From Auanema rhodensis (lineage: Eukaryota; Animalia; Nematoda): DNA of 64,000 nt. The stretch is from positions 8,494,001 through 8,558,000 of the forward strand of contig OZ059898.1 of NCBI GenBank assembly GCA_964057225.1, written 5' to 3'. A program made the translations under genes and the position numbers. Under the pieces are notes generated by a model. It did not search any database. It saw only the letters and a program-made list of their open reading frames with translations, and was not told the origin of the DNA. Shown here one piece after another: positions 1 through 6,636 of this stretch. Numbering within the stretch: the stretch's first letter is position 1; every line of letters begins with the position of its first letter.

Positions 1-459
1 TATAAACCGTAAAAGCTTTAAACTGGAAAAAACTGTGATTTTGTTTTGTTCTTCTAAGAAATTTTTGAAAAGAAAAAAATACATAAAGGTGTTCCCTTTT
101 AGTCGCCTGAAGGTTAGTCGGAGTTGCTTTTAGTATCAAGATTACAAAGATGGTATTGGATGTCCTCCAGATTTTTACATCCTTCCTTCTCTTTTTTAGA
201 ATGTTCATTTGCGCCGACTGCGATTATAAGTAAACAATGCTATGAGCAACTCATATAAAACAAGAAAAAACGAAAGAAAAATATAATACATAGATTGAGA
301 GAATATAAGAAAAGAAAAAAGAAAGAAAGAGAGAGAAAGAGCTCCATTTCACACTAGCTGAAGCTCTTCGTTATTCATTAGTTTAGCTGATTCCATTAGC
401 CACCCACACCTCCCCCCCCCGGTTTGCTATCCACTGGCCACTCGCAGACAATATCAACC

Positions 460-1935
460 ATGCAAATCCAGTTTGGGTTTTCACAAATTTTTAGTTCGTT
501 TAGTAGAAATATTGTCTCAATTTCCGCAAAACACACTTTCTCACGTTACAATAAATAAATTGAAAAACTTTATTTGAACCCATCTGAAAGAAATAGCCAA
601 CATCTTAGTAAATAAAGGAACAACTGAATAAGTTGAGCAATAATTTGGTTTTAATACAAAGTAGATTTTTTAATTTTTTATAACAAAGTTTCAAAAAAAA
701 GTTTAATTTCAATGATTTCAGTTACGTCTGGTTTCTTGCTTTACCCGCAGTGGTCTTATCTCAATGTACAAACTGTAACTATGGTGAGTTAAACAAATAT
801 TCTTAAAATCTTCAAATATAAAAAAGAAAATTTTAAGTTAAAACTTGAGTTAAACCTCCTATACTAGTATTTAGTTTGATATACATATAAGCACATAGTA
901 AATACGTAATTATATATTTCTTTTATTTTTATACAAAAAAATAATATTATAATATTAATAATAAAATAAAGAAATATAAATATTACGTATTAATAAAAAT
1001 AAAATAAATATATGTATATATCGATATATGTATGTTTATACATGTACACAGTATTATGCACAATAATCTGAATAGATTCACGTTATTCCTTCATATTTAA
1101 GTTTCGTTTTCATCGAAATCTTTTAATTTTTCATTCAAATTCATATCTTATACTTGAATATTCACTAACTCACTTACCTTTTCTGTTATTTCACTTAGTC
1201 ATTTCCTATGTCTTGTTAACATACTAATCAAACCAATACCCAGATTCATTGCCCAGTTATCGACGACGATTGGTACGGCGACAAGCATCAGACTATTCAC
1301 CAAATGAATTTGTATCTGCAAATCTTAATGAAGATGATGATACCAGTGAATTGGAGCCACCTATTTTGCCCAGCTATCAAGAAGGAATTCCTGGCTATCT
1401 TCCAGATTATGAAGGAGATCGCTATACTAACCCGAAACGTGTTGAACAAACAAAATCGTTGAATCGTCTATTCTTTGAAGCTTTACGTGCACTAGAATCT
1501 CGTAATCTCTTGCCATTGTCATCTCTCTTGCCCCTATCTTCGAGTTTTGATGATCCATCATCTCTTTCGGTATCACCGAGCGATGAACTTACCAACTCAC
1601 TACCATCGCCAGAAAAAAAGCAAACTCTGATGGATCGCGAAACACGTCGAGCAGATGGTGAATCAACAGCCGATGACATAAGAACTCTTCTGTCATCTGA
1701 CGACCAGTCGATCGTGATTTCACGAGATGAAGCTGGAGCCAATCCGGAAGATGTCATTGAGCTGAACAACAATTCAAATTTGATTACAGTTGAATTTGCA
1801 CCAAATGCTGACGGAGAATTAGATGAAGAATATATAAATAAAGCAAGTAGAGCAATTTATAATGTTTTGAAAACCAATCCCCTGTTTGATGATAAGAATG
1901 TTGAAATTACATTTGAAAAGGCTGATGATGAATAA
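460..1935 (+). CDS. Secreted protein, isoform A (shared exons 460-470 and 722-783, terminal exon 1244-1935)
   Basis: ATGCAAATCCA|gtttgg...tttcag|T TAC GTC TGG... gives MQIHYVWFLALPAVVLSQCTNCNY (signal peptide-like). The phase-1 donor G|gtgagt joins cccag|AT TCA TTG CCC in frame with ORF 1249-1935. Acidic/Ser-rich, with an RRRLVRR basic site. Confidence 0.75.
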
Positions 1936-2151
1936 AGTTTGTCATCATTATCATCAACTTCAGTCATATAAATTATTTTTTCTTTTATCATTTTTCTTAA
2001 AATCACCAGCCATTTCATTTAATTCTTTCGTGAAACAATCTTCTTGTCAAATTTTTTAATTTATTTTTTCAGTTCAATTGTCTGTACATAGCTGAAAAAC
2101 AATTATTTCATTTTAAATTTATCTTATTTGTAAAATTCATACTGTATTAAC

Positions 2152-2192
<41 letters not shown>

Positions 2193-3035
2193 TATATATA
2201 TATGTATAAATTACTTGTAATATTATAATTAAACCTTCCTTAATTATATAATATATCTATTAAATGACATATTTTAACTCTTTTGTTTTTATTTTAATTA
2301 ATATTCATTATAACTTAATATATACACAACAATAATATACACTATCACATAATAATAAAATCCTCACTAAACTATATTAACCAAAAAAATTTGCCAAAAA
2401 ACTTTATGCTTTCTTACCCAAGCAATCCTACTTCAGGAACCAACCAGTATGCTTCTTCCTCCTCCTCTTCCCAAGCTTATCAATCTCAAGATGGAAATAT
2501 GAACGAACCAGGCTATTTACCCGATTATCAAGGAGACAAGTACACTGATCCTCAACGTATTAAAGATACTCAAGCTCTTAATAAAGCTTTCTTCGATTCC
2601 ATTGGTGGTGCTCCACCAGCTCCACCTCTTACTCCAGCTCAACAGGGCATGGACGGAGGAAATGGAGGAAACGTTGGTCAATCTTACAATCCAACTCCTG
2701 TAAATACAGGATACACCAACACCAACACCAACACCAACAACAACTATAATGCAAACTTTGGATACAGTCAGCCAAATACTGGATATAATACAGCTTCAAA
2801 TACGAACAACGCTTACCCGTATCAAGCTAACCCCCAGCAGCCACAGTACGACTATACATCACAAAATCAGAACCAATTACTGAGCTCCGGTAGCTATCAA
2901 CAACAACAACAACAGCCACAGCTTCAGCAACAACAGTATAATAGTCAATACTGCTGTAACACCTACGGACGCAGACGTCGTTCAGCCCCACTATTCGAAT
3001 TCATGAAGCGTCATCCAACCATCTACAGTTTCTAA
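460..3035 (+). CDS. Secreted Q/N-rich protein, isoform B (shared exons plus terminal exon 2437-3035)
   Basis: The same phase-1 donor joins cttcag|GA ACC AAC CAG in frame with ORF 2391-3035 (GTNQYASS...). Q/N/Y-rich, with CC and RRRRS near the C-terminus. Confidence 0.75.
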
Positions 3036-4623
3036 ATAGATTCTTCTCATACCTTTGCTTTTAAAACAGCGATGATTCCCATATGGTAAACGAAAATACA
3101 AGCAATTTTCATAATTTTATGGTAATGAGCAGCATTTTATAATCGCTTTATTATGTATTATGAATATTGCTTTGAAGCCATTTGTGTACATAACAATCTT
3201 CATATATTTCAGATATACATAAATCCCAACCCCCTTTCTCTTAAAATGTTTGAAAACCTTTCTTTCTTCTTCAGCTGCTTCATCCTGCCTTTTAACCGTT
3301 CAAATCCCTTTTTTTTTGTATTTTAAAATTATCTTTTCTCTTTTTCATCCCCCAATCTCTGCTATATCCCCCCTATCAAACGTGTCTTTAATCATTATCT
3401 TCATCATGTATTCGATTAATCTATAAACAAGCTATTATCATATCGGAAAAACTTCATATTGTCCATTTACAAGAACAGACACAGAAGATAAAACAGCATT
3501 TTTCCAACAAATGAAAAGCCAAAAACTTTAATTTTTTGAAATTACATTCAGATTATTGAACATATTTCTTTTTTTCTCAATTATTTCTTTCTAAAAATAT
3601 TGAAATGAAATCAATGAGTGCTTGAAACTATATTATATACTAGATTATATGAATCAAAATAATTTCGTTTTTCACTCAATTAATTAATAAAAAATAAATA
3701 AAAATTTGAATTTAGGTTCAACATCAACATACACGAATAAACGTGTTTATGATCCATCTAACGGTAATCAAGTAAGCAGCAACTATGTCAGTTCTTATGT
3801 TAGTCCCGTACTGTATGACCCTACAGCTACGAATACAAACTTTAACAACAACAACTACAACAACATGCAAATGATGTCAACAACAACAGCACCCAAGCGT
3901 TTATATGACAACTATAACCCAACAAACACAAATTATAATTATAATAATAATTATAATACAGGTTATAACAACAATGGATATAGTTCGAGCAATACTAACC
4001 AAGTTCCATACCAAAGTACAAATAATTATTTATTCGATTACTGGAACACCAACGGAGCCTCTATGACTAGTAACAATCTGAATCAACTCATTGTTAATCC
4101 CAATCGGGTACTGTACGACGCTATCTCAGCTACAAGTACTCAGAACCCAAACTACTCCGGATCAAATAGTTACAACAACAACTACATGTACAGCAATAGC
4201 AATAACAACAATGGCTACTCCTCCACAGGATATTACTCATCAACAACACCAAGTCCTTACAACACTGTTAGCAGTACCAGCAGTTACAGTAACGTTAATT
4301 CCAATTACAATTCTGGAGCTTCAAACTATAACAATAACCCTCAGTACAACAACAATAATGGTATCTATTCCAACACTGCTTATGGAAGTAGCTCATGCTG
4401 CTCAGCAACGTCAAACAGTTGCTGCTATCAACTTAACAGTAATGGAAATTCAGCAAGCACTGTCTTCTATGACCCTGGAATGAGATCTTCTTCCGCTTCT
4501 GGCAGCACCAACAATTATTACTACGCTCCATACAGAACATCGTCCACCTCGAGCCTATCTCAACCAAACAGCAATGTACCTATCACTTATAGCTACTCTT
4601 CCACTTATGGAAAGAAGAAATAA
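460..4623 (+). CDS. Secreted N/Y/S-rich protein, isoform C (shared exons plus terminal exon 3716-4623)
   Basis: The same donor joins tttag|GT TCA ACA TCA in frame with ORF 3706-4623 (GSTSTYTNKR...). Repeated YD motifs, two CC pairs, ends YGKKK. Confidence 0.75.
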
Positions 4624-5190
4624 GCTATTTCGCAGGAAATATCATTGAATGCTTTATCAGTTGTATAGTTAATCATGCAAATCGTATCAGAATCTCAAAA
4701 GAACCTATGTCATTGCCGAGATTTTTTATTTTCTTGTATAGTTTTTTTCATATGAAATGAATATTTACATTCCTATTTTTTTCATAATTTAGATGAGAAT
4801 CAATTGAAAATCCCGAAACATATGCAAGAGCATTCAATTAAACGAATCCTGCCATAGAAAAACAACCAAAACTGACGTCTTAATTGAAAACGAGATTAGA
4901 AAGAACGAGTACTCTTTCAAATACTGATTAATGCTTGGATTACGATAAATATCATCACAAACCATTTTCAAATGTTTTCAAGATAATACATCAAAGCTTA
5001 ATATCAAATTTCTTAGTACAAAATTTGATATTGGTTTTCGATATAAAATTGATTTGTATCAAATAAAAAAAGTTGTTCTTTAATCTTATATTTCTCACTA
5101 TACATCCTCAACAAATTAAAAGCTATACACATTTAAAGAATAATAAACAAAGAAAAAACAATAAACAAGAAAAACCTAAGAAGTTATTTC

Positions 5191-5780
5191 TCAGTCCCAT
5201 CTATTTCGATTAATTAATGATGCTAAACTATCTTCAACAGTAGAATTTTTGTGCAATAGGCTACCAACGTTGGCTTGTCTCCGAACAGCATTTTTAGATC
5301 CAACTACTCTTTTCTCCTGAAGAAAGTACATGAAATATTTCAAGAACTAAAAGGAGAAAAATGATACTTTTCCAGGCATTCTTCTAGCTTCTTTTTCCTT
5401 TGCGTCGTTTATTCTAAGATCTTCTAATCCAGCTACATTCATCTGATCGAAATAATCTTGTTCAACATTCTAAAATTAATACAACTTAAATAGGTGAAAG
5501 GTTACTGGCAAAAATACCTCAGTAATGTATGGCTTAGTTAACAGTTTCATAACCTCATATTCTCTGTGTAACCTCTGTCTCATGGTAATAACTTTATCCG
5601 GATAAATGGGATAATCAGGTCTTCCTGTTCTATAAAAATTGTTCTTTAATTTTGTAAATTACTGAATAAAACATACACTTTCTGTTGAGGAAGCAAAGGA
5701 CCTCGGTAACCAATTTCAAAAACTTTTCGGTTCCAATGACGTCTGTTCAGATTGCCTCTTAACGCTCTACTTAAAAACAT
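5191..5780 (-). CDS. MRPL57: Mitochondrial ribosomal protein mL63 (MRP63/MRPL57)-like, 4 exons
   Basis: Spliced translation MFLSRALRG...RLHREYEVMKLLTKPYITE|VEQ...STVEDSLASLINRNRWD* matches the remembered MRP63 pattern (MFLT start, RL..E.E....L..PY.T..QE, C-terminal W). Confidence 0.7.
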
Positions 5781-6636
5781 CTTGAGCCAACTATTCTAAC
5801 AAAACTAAAAAATAAAGCATTAAGTAAAAATCTTTTAGAAGTGAACTTAAAACAAAAACGAAACTGTAATATTAACATTAGAAATACAATATTATACAGA
5901 AGTTTATAATCACTAATTAATTTTGCAATACTGTTTATGCACTGATTTCATTAAATTTGTTAAACGGTTAATCTATGCACAAAAGGAAAAAAAGTTATTC
6001 TAAAATACTATTAAAATATAAAATATATATAAGTATAGTCTACGCCAATAATTGATTGACGCAAATTCGGTGTAACCTCGGCTGTTCTAATTATTTGAAG
6101 AATTTTCAGACACCAAAGCTTTCGGATTATCTTAAACCACGAAATATCAGCATAGCTTACCTTTTTATTAAGTTATACTGACATTTCTGATGATGAACAA
6201 AGGACTCCTTTGAGGTTTGCAAAGTTAAAAATTTGGTAAATCATCTGATTTTCGTTATCTATTCTACTAGGTGTATCGTGTCCGAATATAGAAAACTATT
6301 CAATTTCTCAAAATTAAAAAATTGTAAAAAGATGAAAAGTGATATAATATATTTTTACTCTTTTATACAATAACGGCAAAATAATGAACAAATCCACCAA
6401 TATCCCCATAGATATGATCCTCACAGTCTTTCCTACATATCACAACTTTGACTGGTAAAGTTGGGTACAAATGAATAAATTAATGTGGAAATTTTATAAA
6501 TACATTGGAAACGACTTGAAAAGGATGACTAAATAAATAAATTAAAACAAAATGCAATTGGAAAAAATATAAATGACATAGAAATCACTTAGCACAACCA
6601 ATGGAATATTTGTATTCAAATATGAATGAAAGTATT

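Follow-up and report, generated by a model that had tools for sequence, protein, structure and literature searches.

Near the left end of a 64,000-nucleotide (nt) stretch of the genome of the nematode Auanema rhodensis (GenBank assembly GCA_964057225.1, contig OZ059898.1, positions 8,494,001 to 8,558,000 of the forward strand; hereafter the window, in whose coordinates all positions are given), we describe what is very probably a single plus-strand protein-coding gene in which one promoter and one leader serve three alternative last exons, here called A, B and C, with extracellular matrix or cuticle-lining material as the favoured nature of the products. Each ending carries its own stop codon and 3' untranslated region (UTR), which makes the three alternative last exons, as in calcitonin/CGRP. 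The match of splice sites and phases is more than chance, since RNA contigs use the sites and the phase pattern recurs in relatives. A shared signal peptide followed by alternative last exons is a well-known arrangement, and the locus itself is old and already partly annotated in other nematodes.

Gene structure and transcript evidence

The RNA data are assembled contigs of four runs, all labelled 'RNA?' and belonging to one study, placed on window positions 1-5800. All four runs behave as RNA, with zero depth across intergenic and intronic bins, and a minus-strand neighbour at 5094-5800 is present in the same contigs with its three 47-51 nt CT..AC introns spliced out. Two joints of the GT..AG type, 782>1243 and 782>2436, were found in four of four runs and, with the cut shifted by +1, correspond to 783>1244 and 783>2437. 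The initial annotation had proposed a donor at 783 and three AG acceptors of matching phase, to be joined as 783>1244, 783>2437 and 783>3716; donor and acceptors are readily read in the sequence and are the sites used by the RNA contigs, the first two joints being directly observed and the third deduced from contig geometry and depth (see below).

The shared exon 2 (722-783, plus strand, 62 nt), defined by the contigs and its splice sites, lies between the acceptor tttcag at 716-721 (AG at 720-721) and a donor GT at 784-785. It encodes QCTNCNY behind the remainder of the predicted signal peptide, and its end at 783 is in phase 1 and reads CAA TGT ACA AAC TGT AAC TAT G^gtgagt (the caret marks an exon border or, in proteins, a cleavage point). 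Pieces at 722-783 occur in the three runs for which rows are listed. Upstream of 722 the contigs of all four runs go on for up to 115 letters with ...GATACATTTCGAATTCAGTATGATATCTAC, a string that is unique in the genome (G000:C6:8493749-8493778, a distance of 223 nt from the window). The genome continues there with gtgagt, and the string is located about 100 nt downstream of CATATAAATAG. As this continuation maps once, upstream of the window, exon 1 supplies the coding letters ATG ATA TCT AC^gt, which stand behind a TATA box; the longest contig would end 7 nt behind that box. Intron 1 consequently starts upstream of the window and has a length of 943 nt.

Read together, exons 1 and 2 give MISTYVWFLALPAVVLS followed by QCTNCNY. 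Judged by eye only, MISTYVWFLALPAVVLS is a predicted signal peptide, with a short n-region, a hydrophobic core and V-L-S before the Q, and the N-termini of relatives are similar. The left boundary and first coding stretch had originally been placed at 460, and this part of the model has to be given up: 460-721 (plus strand) is the 3' part of intron 1, shows zero RNA depth and is bypassed by contigs that jump from 722 to the upstream exon. Depth was likewise 0 in bins 1-582 of all four runs (389-582 included). The ATG at 460, taken as the start of a first exon that would use a GT at 471, is ruled out by this zero depth together with the mapped exon 1. Simple sequence in intron 1 comprises a stretch rich in GA and some 11 consecutive C (298-344 and 411-422); part of the simple sequence in the introns of the gene was skipped as repeats in the mapping.

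Last exon A (1244-2094, plus strand; joint in 4/4 runs, orthologues known) has its coding part at 1244-1935 (229 amino acids plus the split codon) and a 3' UTR reaching at least 2094. Its acceptor, cccag^AT TCA TTG CCC, joins as D-SLP, and the product is acidic (pI 4.3) and rich in D, E, S and L. Last exon B (2437-3628, plus strand; joint in 4/4 runs) is coding at 2437-3035, has the acceptor cttcag^GA ACC AAC CAG (joined G-TNQ), encodes a Q/N/Y-rich protein (Q 15%, N 13%, Y 10%) with the end CC..GRRRRS..., and is followed by a 3' UTR to at least 3628, or 3669 at low depth. Last exon C (3716-4736, plus strand; from contigs and depth balance) is coding at 3716-4623 with a 3' UTR to at least 4736; its acceptor is atttag^GT TCA ACA TCA (joined G-STS), and its product is N/S/Y/T-rich (N 23%, S 20%, Y 13%), contains SCCS..S..CCYQ and has a YGKKK end. 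All three frames close with TAA (1933-1935, 3033-3035 and 4621-4623 in A, B and C respectively). The measured compositions thus agree with the acidic, Q/N-rich and N/Y/S-rich characters noted in the initial annotation, as does its remark that the three open reading frames (ORFs) lack signal peptides of their own: before the A, B and C acceptors the frames stay open for no more than 6, 40 and 9 codons, respectively, and none includes one. Tyrosines number 8 in A, 19 in B and 40 in C; cysteine motifs comprise the CxxC of the shared N-terminus and a CC near the C-termini of B and C; and dibasic sites are present in A (RRR/RR), B (RRRR) and C (KR). The acceptors of A (ATACCCAG), B (TACTTCAG) and C (GAATTTAG) deviate to differing degrees from the nematode UUUUCAG consensus. 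A search of the genome revealed no further copies of A, B or C.

The contigs keep the three endings apart. Those of A span 1243-2007 up to 1243-2094, those of B run without a break from 2436 to 3522-3628 (with an extra low-depth piece to 3669), and those of C span 3715-4714 up to 3715-4736 and bear 28 additional 5' letters in four of four runs. Contigs that connect A with B, or B with C, are absent, in line with the earlier proposal that the stop-terminated endings are mutually exclusive, and no contig shows B or C starting from a leader of its own, the case that the initial annotation had named as contradicting it. The A and B contigs stop before the next acceptor, all contig ends lie at or before 2094 (A), 3669 (B) and 4736 (C) with no read-on into the next exon, and RNA depth is 0 at 971-1164 and 2135-2328. 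Contig depths are unsuited to ranking the isoforms A, B and C.

The B 3' UTR has AATGAA hexamers at 3510 and 3604. Three overlapping AATAAA are present at 3686-3702, at the far end of the B 3' UTR and 13-30 nt before the C acceptor (3714-3716), so that B transcripts polyadenylated at a distal site would end almost at the C splice site. Between A and B there is a (TA)n run at 2148-2217.

The probable leader-to-C junction

We consider it highly probable that 783>3716 is used, judging from contig geometry and depth balance. Each C contig carries 28 letters before 3715 and each B contig 28 letters before 2436, while the A contigs carry 29. These numbers are those expected from a k=31 de Bruijn graph in which the branch point of A follows ...ATG and those of B (G^GAAC) and C (G^GTTC) come one letter further on. 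The tally of contigs lying 'only partly' on the mapped region does not include those of C, which means that the 28 letters of the C contigs fall within 1-5800.

The depth data point the same way. All depth bins over A, B, C and the neighbouring gene are fully explained by the listed pieces, and the two bins over 722-783 balance only with a C leader on 755-782. With this leader included, the residual corresponds to a single 31-letter contig (754-784) with a depth close to or above that of B plus C (ratio 2.86-2.88 versus 2.875 expected); without it, the ratio is 3.00-3.05 and no such contig fits. The numbers of mapped contigs per run (6, 6, 6 and 7) leave room for exactly one such extra contig. 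The C acceptor is situated directly behind an A/T-rich run.

A nematode-specific conserved block

Exons A and B share a conserved block, PGYLPDYxGDxYTxPxR...LN..FF, identified by BLASTP of A against B (18/34 identical and 30/34 positive residues, E 4e-13). In A it occupies 1390-1491 (plus strand, PGYLPDYEGDRYTNPKRVEQTKSLNRLFFEALRA), and in B the family-defining block, delimited by nematode protein matches and a profile search, occupies 2508-2654 (plus strand, PGYLPDYQGDKYTDPQRIKDTQALNKAFFDSIGGAPPAPPLTPAQQGM). B and C have no detectable similarity, and the block is absent from C.

A search with exon B matched 20 nematode proteins (E 1e-33 to 1e-8) at 67-89% identity over the block, with the consensus PGYLPDYxGDxYTxPxRIxxTQALNKxFFDSIGGxP. 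A profile built from 24 copies of the block and run against 1.84 billion representative proteins gave 56 clusters, 42 of them at E<=1e-10. The family is small and nematode-only, and none of its members is characterised. These come from Caenorhabditis, Pristionchus, Mesorhabditis, Heterorhabditis, Haemonchus, Trichostrongylus, Heligmosomoides and Nippostrongylus, and also from Necator, Ancylostoma, Oesophagostomum, Strongyloides, Parastrongyloides, Steinernema, Ditylenchus and Syphacia; nearly all bear uninformative or automatic labels. The block reads DY-RGD-KY, with an RGD tripeptide, in Strongyloides, Steinernema and others (P0002-P0006, P0018-P0020, P0027 and P0028), and has QGD or EGD in clade V. 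In Ditylenchus dipsaci (P0048/P0069) it occurs in models of 451-454 amino acids with the UniRef label 'Cystatin domain-containing', either a true fusion or a merged model.

Pfam gave no match at E<=1 for A, B or C, the 'Zasp-like motif' with which some UniRef relatives are labelled included. For B there was no PDB match at E<=1 and none in the ESM Atlas. A word-based protein search with A and C returned nothing, not even A or C themselves, and the orthologues of these two exons were reached through synteny only, after exon B had given matches. In the searchable literature no paper with the block motif strings or with six locus tags of relatives was found. AlphaFold2 prediction of exon A from a five-sequence alignment gave a mean pLDDT of 51, mostly low-confidence or disordered, with a helix of the block at residues 63-85 (pLDDT about 80) and a weakly predicted C-terminal beta-beta-alpha-beta unit. 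The block is far better conserved than the tails.

Conservation of the locus in other nematodes

The order leader-A-B-C is preserved in Caenorhabditis, and Pristionchus has a leader, an A-like ORF, a B block and a C-like tail in the same order. The C. briggsae locus (L007) has a TATA box, then a 14-nt coding exon 1, and an exon 2 ending TGC ACT ACC TGC AAT ACC AAC CCG AAC TAT G^gtgagt; downstream of it come an A exon (G^AT; stop 7777), a B exon (G^GT; stop 8540) and a C exon (G^GC; stop 10204), with the order and phase seen here. The organisation of a second Caenorhabditis-like contig (L012) is identical. In both, exon 2 ends AAC/AAT TAT G^gt, and a phase-1 donor faces three phase-1 acceptors (G^AT, G^GT, and G^GC or G^GT), so that the conserved exon order that the initial annotation had suggested looking for is indeed present, phases included. 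In C. bovis the leader, A and B were found. An unannotated ORF of Pristionchus fissidentatus (BTSY01000003.1, L010, 8206-8901), located between the leader and the B-block exon, contains an A-like block, GPLPSFVGDRYTDPSR.

Orthologues of exon A occur in C. briggsae, L012, C. bovis and Pristionchus, and an alignment of A-type exons covers the block and a C-terminal ...ATRAI..L...DP.YI... segment. Exons of the C type are conserved in C. briggsae, L012, Pristionchus, Necator, Heligmosomoides and Nippostrongylus, and their alignment covers SCCS..S..CCYQ and a YG[RK]K(K) end. Existing annotation covers part of this: C. briggsae/nigoni L3Y34_001203 (CBG18114) has models for leader plus A (233 amino acids), the leader followed by the initial part of B and then C (371), and B alone (179), and Necator americanus RB195_008327 has forms of 430, 263 and 243 amino acids, the 263-residue form having the end CCASTYRRRRS..., much like B here.

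The C-containing C. briggsae model relies on an internal donor of B, which reads G^gtcagt in Caenorhabditis and G^gtaccg in Pristionchus. The homologous position here (2670-2685, plus strand) has a weak phase-1 donor candidate, GTTG^gtcaat, with the cut at 2676^2677. The first part of B is a phase 1-1 unit in both species, of 249 nt (83 codons) in C. briggsae and 240 nt here. These contigs show no sign of use of the 2676^2677 donor: that of B continues across it, and that of C is preceded by one piece only. C joined to the leader equals skipping of the 240-nt block cassette.

Several public models of the locus deserve comment. In C. bovis (CADEPM010000003.1, L009, 6001-8599; P0007) and Heterorhabditis (P0021), A- and B-type endings are fused in one model; these fusions, which splice around the A stop and use sequence upstream of the B acceptor, are probably mis-merged alternative last exons. 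The B-only (L007, 8001-8540, 179 amino acids) and A-only (P0074, CBG18114, 205 amino acids) models of C. briggsae begin at an intronic ATG just upstream of the acceptor (MLFSG^TSS... and MNS^DNSHH... respectively), starts that are probably artefacts of requiring a start codon. A C. elegans orthologue among the ZC21.x genes, guessed from a neighbouring ZC21_8-family gene in C. briggsae, was dropped, there being no sequence link and only unrelated expression tables.

Proposed mechanism

The TATA box, some 350 nt upstream of where the window begins, would be followed by the transcription start. Exon 1 would consist of a 5' UTR and ATG ATA TCT AC, and exon 2 would complete MISTYVWFLALPAVVLS and add the seven mature residues QCTNCNY. 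The phase-1 donor at 783 would then be spliced to one of the phase-1 acceptors at 1244, 2437 or 3716; when a downstream ending is chosen, the upstream ones would be removed as intron, and the transcript would end in A, B or C. The choice presumably comes about by competition between an acceptor with the cleavage/polyadenylation site behind it and continued transcription to the next acceptor, as happens in the calcitonin/CGRP gene. All three products would pass through the secretory pathway, with the short CxxC N-terminus as the only part common to the three. A and B would each present one copy of the nematode-specific block of 35-50 residues, followed by an acidic tail in A or a Q/N/Y-rich tail in B, and C would correspond to the N/S/Y-rich, CC-containing tail that follows the B block in other nematodes, the block being skipped here.

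Alternative explanations

The annotation of relatives raises the possibility that only A and B are spliced to the leader and that C is normally added to the first part of B via 2676^2677, leader>C being a minor form or an assembly artefact. A C-type tail is annotated behind a B block elsewhere (the C. briggsae model of 371 amino acids, P0010, P0026, P0034, P0053 and P0066), a phase 1-1 unit makes up the opening 240 nt of B, with a GT at the homologous place, and 783>3716 is missing from the listed joints. We nevertheless regard this arrangement as improbable, for the B contig is unbroken across 2676 in four of four runs and the C contig has 28 upstream letters, with no start at a merge point. 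Moreover, bin 2523-2716 is without extra depth, the bins over 722-783 need the C leader, and the local donor gtcaat is weaker than the gtcagt of Caenorhabditis. Still more improbable, to the point that we give it very little credence, is the existence of three separate genes, with B and C having their own promoters or being operon genes with a trans-spliced leader (SL), and the shared-leader contigs being chimeric. Nematodes do trans-splice, the end of the B 3' UTR lies <100 nt before the C acceptor in an operon-like manner, and there is an in-frame ATG 11 codons upstream of the B acceptor. However, the frames are without their own signal peptide or a usable start, and in four runs the contigs open with leader letters, precisely at the GT..AG borders. 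With an SL form, B or C would gain a second predecessor and their contigs would lack the 28-29 leader letters. No loose end is reported at 2437 or 3716, and depth is 0 at 971-1164 and 2135-2328; the phase match is, in addition, conserved across genera.

A further possibility leaves the architecture as it is and regards the products as processed secreted peptide precursors, from which the conserved block is released by convertases as the active part. We rate this as rather unlikely and rank it second for function. It is suggested by an R-x-K/R-R^Q site just before the block in A-type exons and Strongyloides (RRLVRR^Q here, HKR^Q and YKR^Q in Caenorhabditis, FKR^Q in Strongyloides), by the RRRR site of B before a short C-terminal peptide, by the G-K/R-K/R ends of C-type tails, which may resemble an amidation signal, and by the superior conservation of the block. 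Against it, long stretches of low complexity make up most of each product, which is not typical of peptide precursors, no dibasic site flanks the B block here, and a literature search for the block motif found it in no peptidomics paper.

The model of one gene with three alternative last exons and matrix-type products, which we prefer, has weaknesses of its own. The whole RNA basis is one study and assembled contigs, which lose rare forms and in which true ends and true levels are not visible. Among the listed joints 783>3716 is lacking, one joint row having been dropped at skipped repeats. The canonical AATAAA was not found near the contig ends of A and C, and poly(A) sites are not visible in the contigs. 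For the functional part, Pfam, PDB and the ESM Atlas are blank, and the AlphaFold2 model is mostly of low confidence.

Possible function

Based on sequence features, we favour the view that the products may be cross-linked, convertase-processed extracellular matrix or cuticle-lining material, with a peptide precursor as second choice. This reading follows from predicted secretion, strong low complexity, the many tyrosines, the CxxC/CC pairs at both ends and the dibasic sites. The composition fits the role in cuticle or apical extracellular matrix put forward in the initial annotation, though the features would allow a processed peptide precursor equally well. The secreted intrinsically disordered cuticle proteins of C. 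elegans, namely the APPG, IDPA, IDPB and IDPC families (PMC9629831), resemble the predicted products in having a signal peptide, strong low complexity and a Q/N/Y/S/G-rich composition with cysteine motifs; the analogy is purely functional and membership is not claimed. Dibasic sites do not separate a matrix from a peptide role, since cuticle collagens also require dibasic (convertase) cleavage (PMC10538796).

More speculatively, and with considerable doubt on our part, the signal peptide and the seven-residue CxxC stub might be a handle for secretion and cross-linking (or a pro-peptide handle) that is used anew with each ending, so that a single promoter would co-deliver three extracellular materials. 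In this lineage C would have been freed from the otherwise obligatory block by decay of the internal donor of B, the block now always being skipped for C. If true, this would be a rewired ancient nematode gene, in which duplicated blocks are serial in clade IV and alternative exons in clade V.

Neighbouring gene

The small, well-covered minus-strand gene at 5094-5800 has CT..AC joints at 5315/5367, 5469/5518 and 5629/5677 and an ATG at 5780. Its product, which starts MFLSRALRGNLNRRHWNRK..., may resemble a small mitochondrial ribosomal protein.

Comparison with known systems

What is new here is the uncharacterised nematode-only family, its frequent mis-annotation and a local form of the gene whose C ending leaves out the conserved block. 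The analysis provides a corrected gene model for a locus that is often wrong in automatic annotation, and draws attention to a strongly conserved, putatively secreted family that is present in the parasites Necator, Ancylostoma, Haemonchus, Strongyloides and Ditylenchus. It also offers a clean example of duplicated protein modules turned into alternative endings, the splicing principle itself being textbook.

Among the closest systems are the orthologous loci (C. briggsae L3Y34_001203 / L5515_004060, C. nigoni B9Z55_009997 and Necator RB195_008327), which share the predicted signal peptide and CxxC stub ending ...NY G^gt, the order and intron phases of A, B and C, and annotation as one gene with several isoforms. 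They differ in that C is annotated after the first 83 codons of B via the internal donor and leader>C is not annotated there, whereas in Auanema the RNA gives leader>B in its long form and, as deduced above, leader>C directly, with no joining of the N-terminal part of B to C. The two-block proteins of Strongyloides and Parastrongyloides (e.g. SRAE_2000214300) and Haemonchus placei P0001 have the same block together with a predicted signal peptide and spacers of low complexity, and a dibasic site precedes the first of their two blocks, but they carry both blocks in series in one compact frame and not as alternative exons.

A further parallel is CALCA, the calcitonin/CGRP gene, in which common 5' exons are joined to alternative terminal exons that have their own stop and 3' end. 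As in the model proposed for the Auanema gene, one promoter is used, the common 5' exons give a signal peptide and a short N-terminal part, and different secreted products result. The two systems differ in the number of endings (two in CALCA versus three here), in the shared mature part, which here is 7 residues, and in the products, which here are long and of low complexity and not small hormones.

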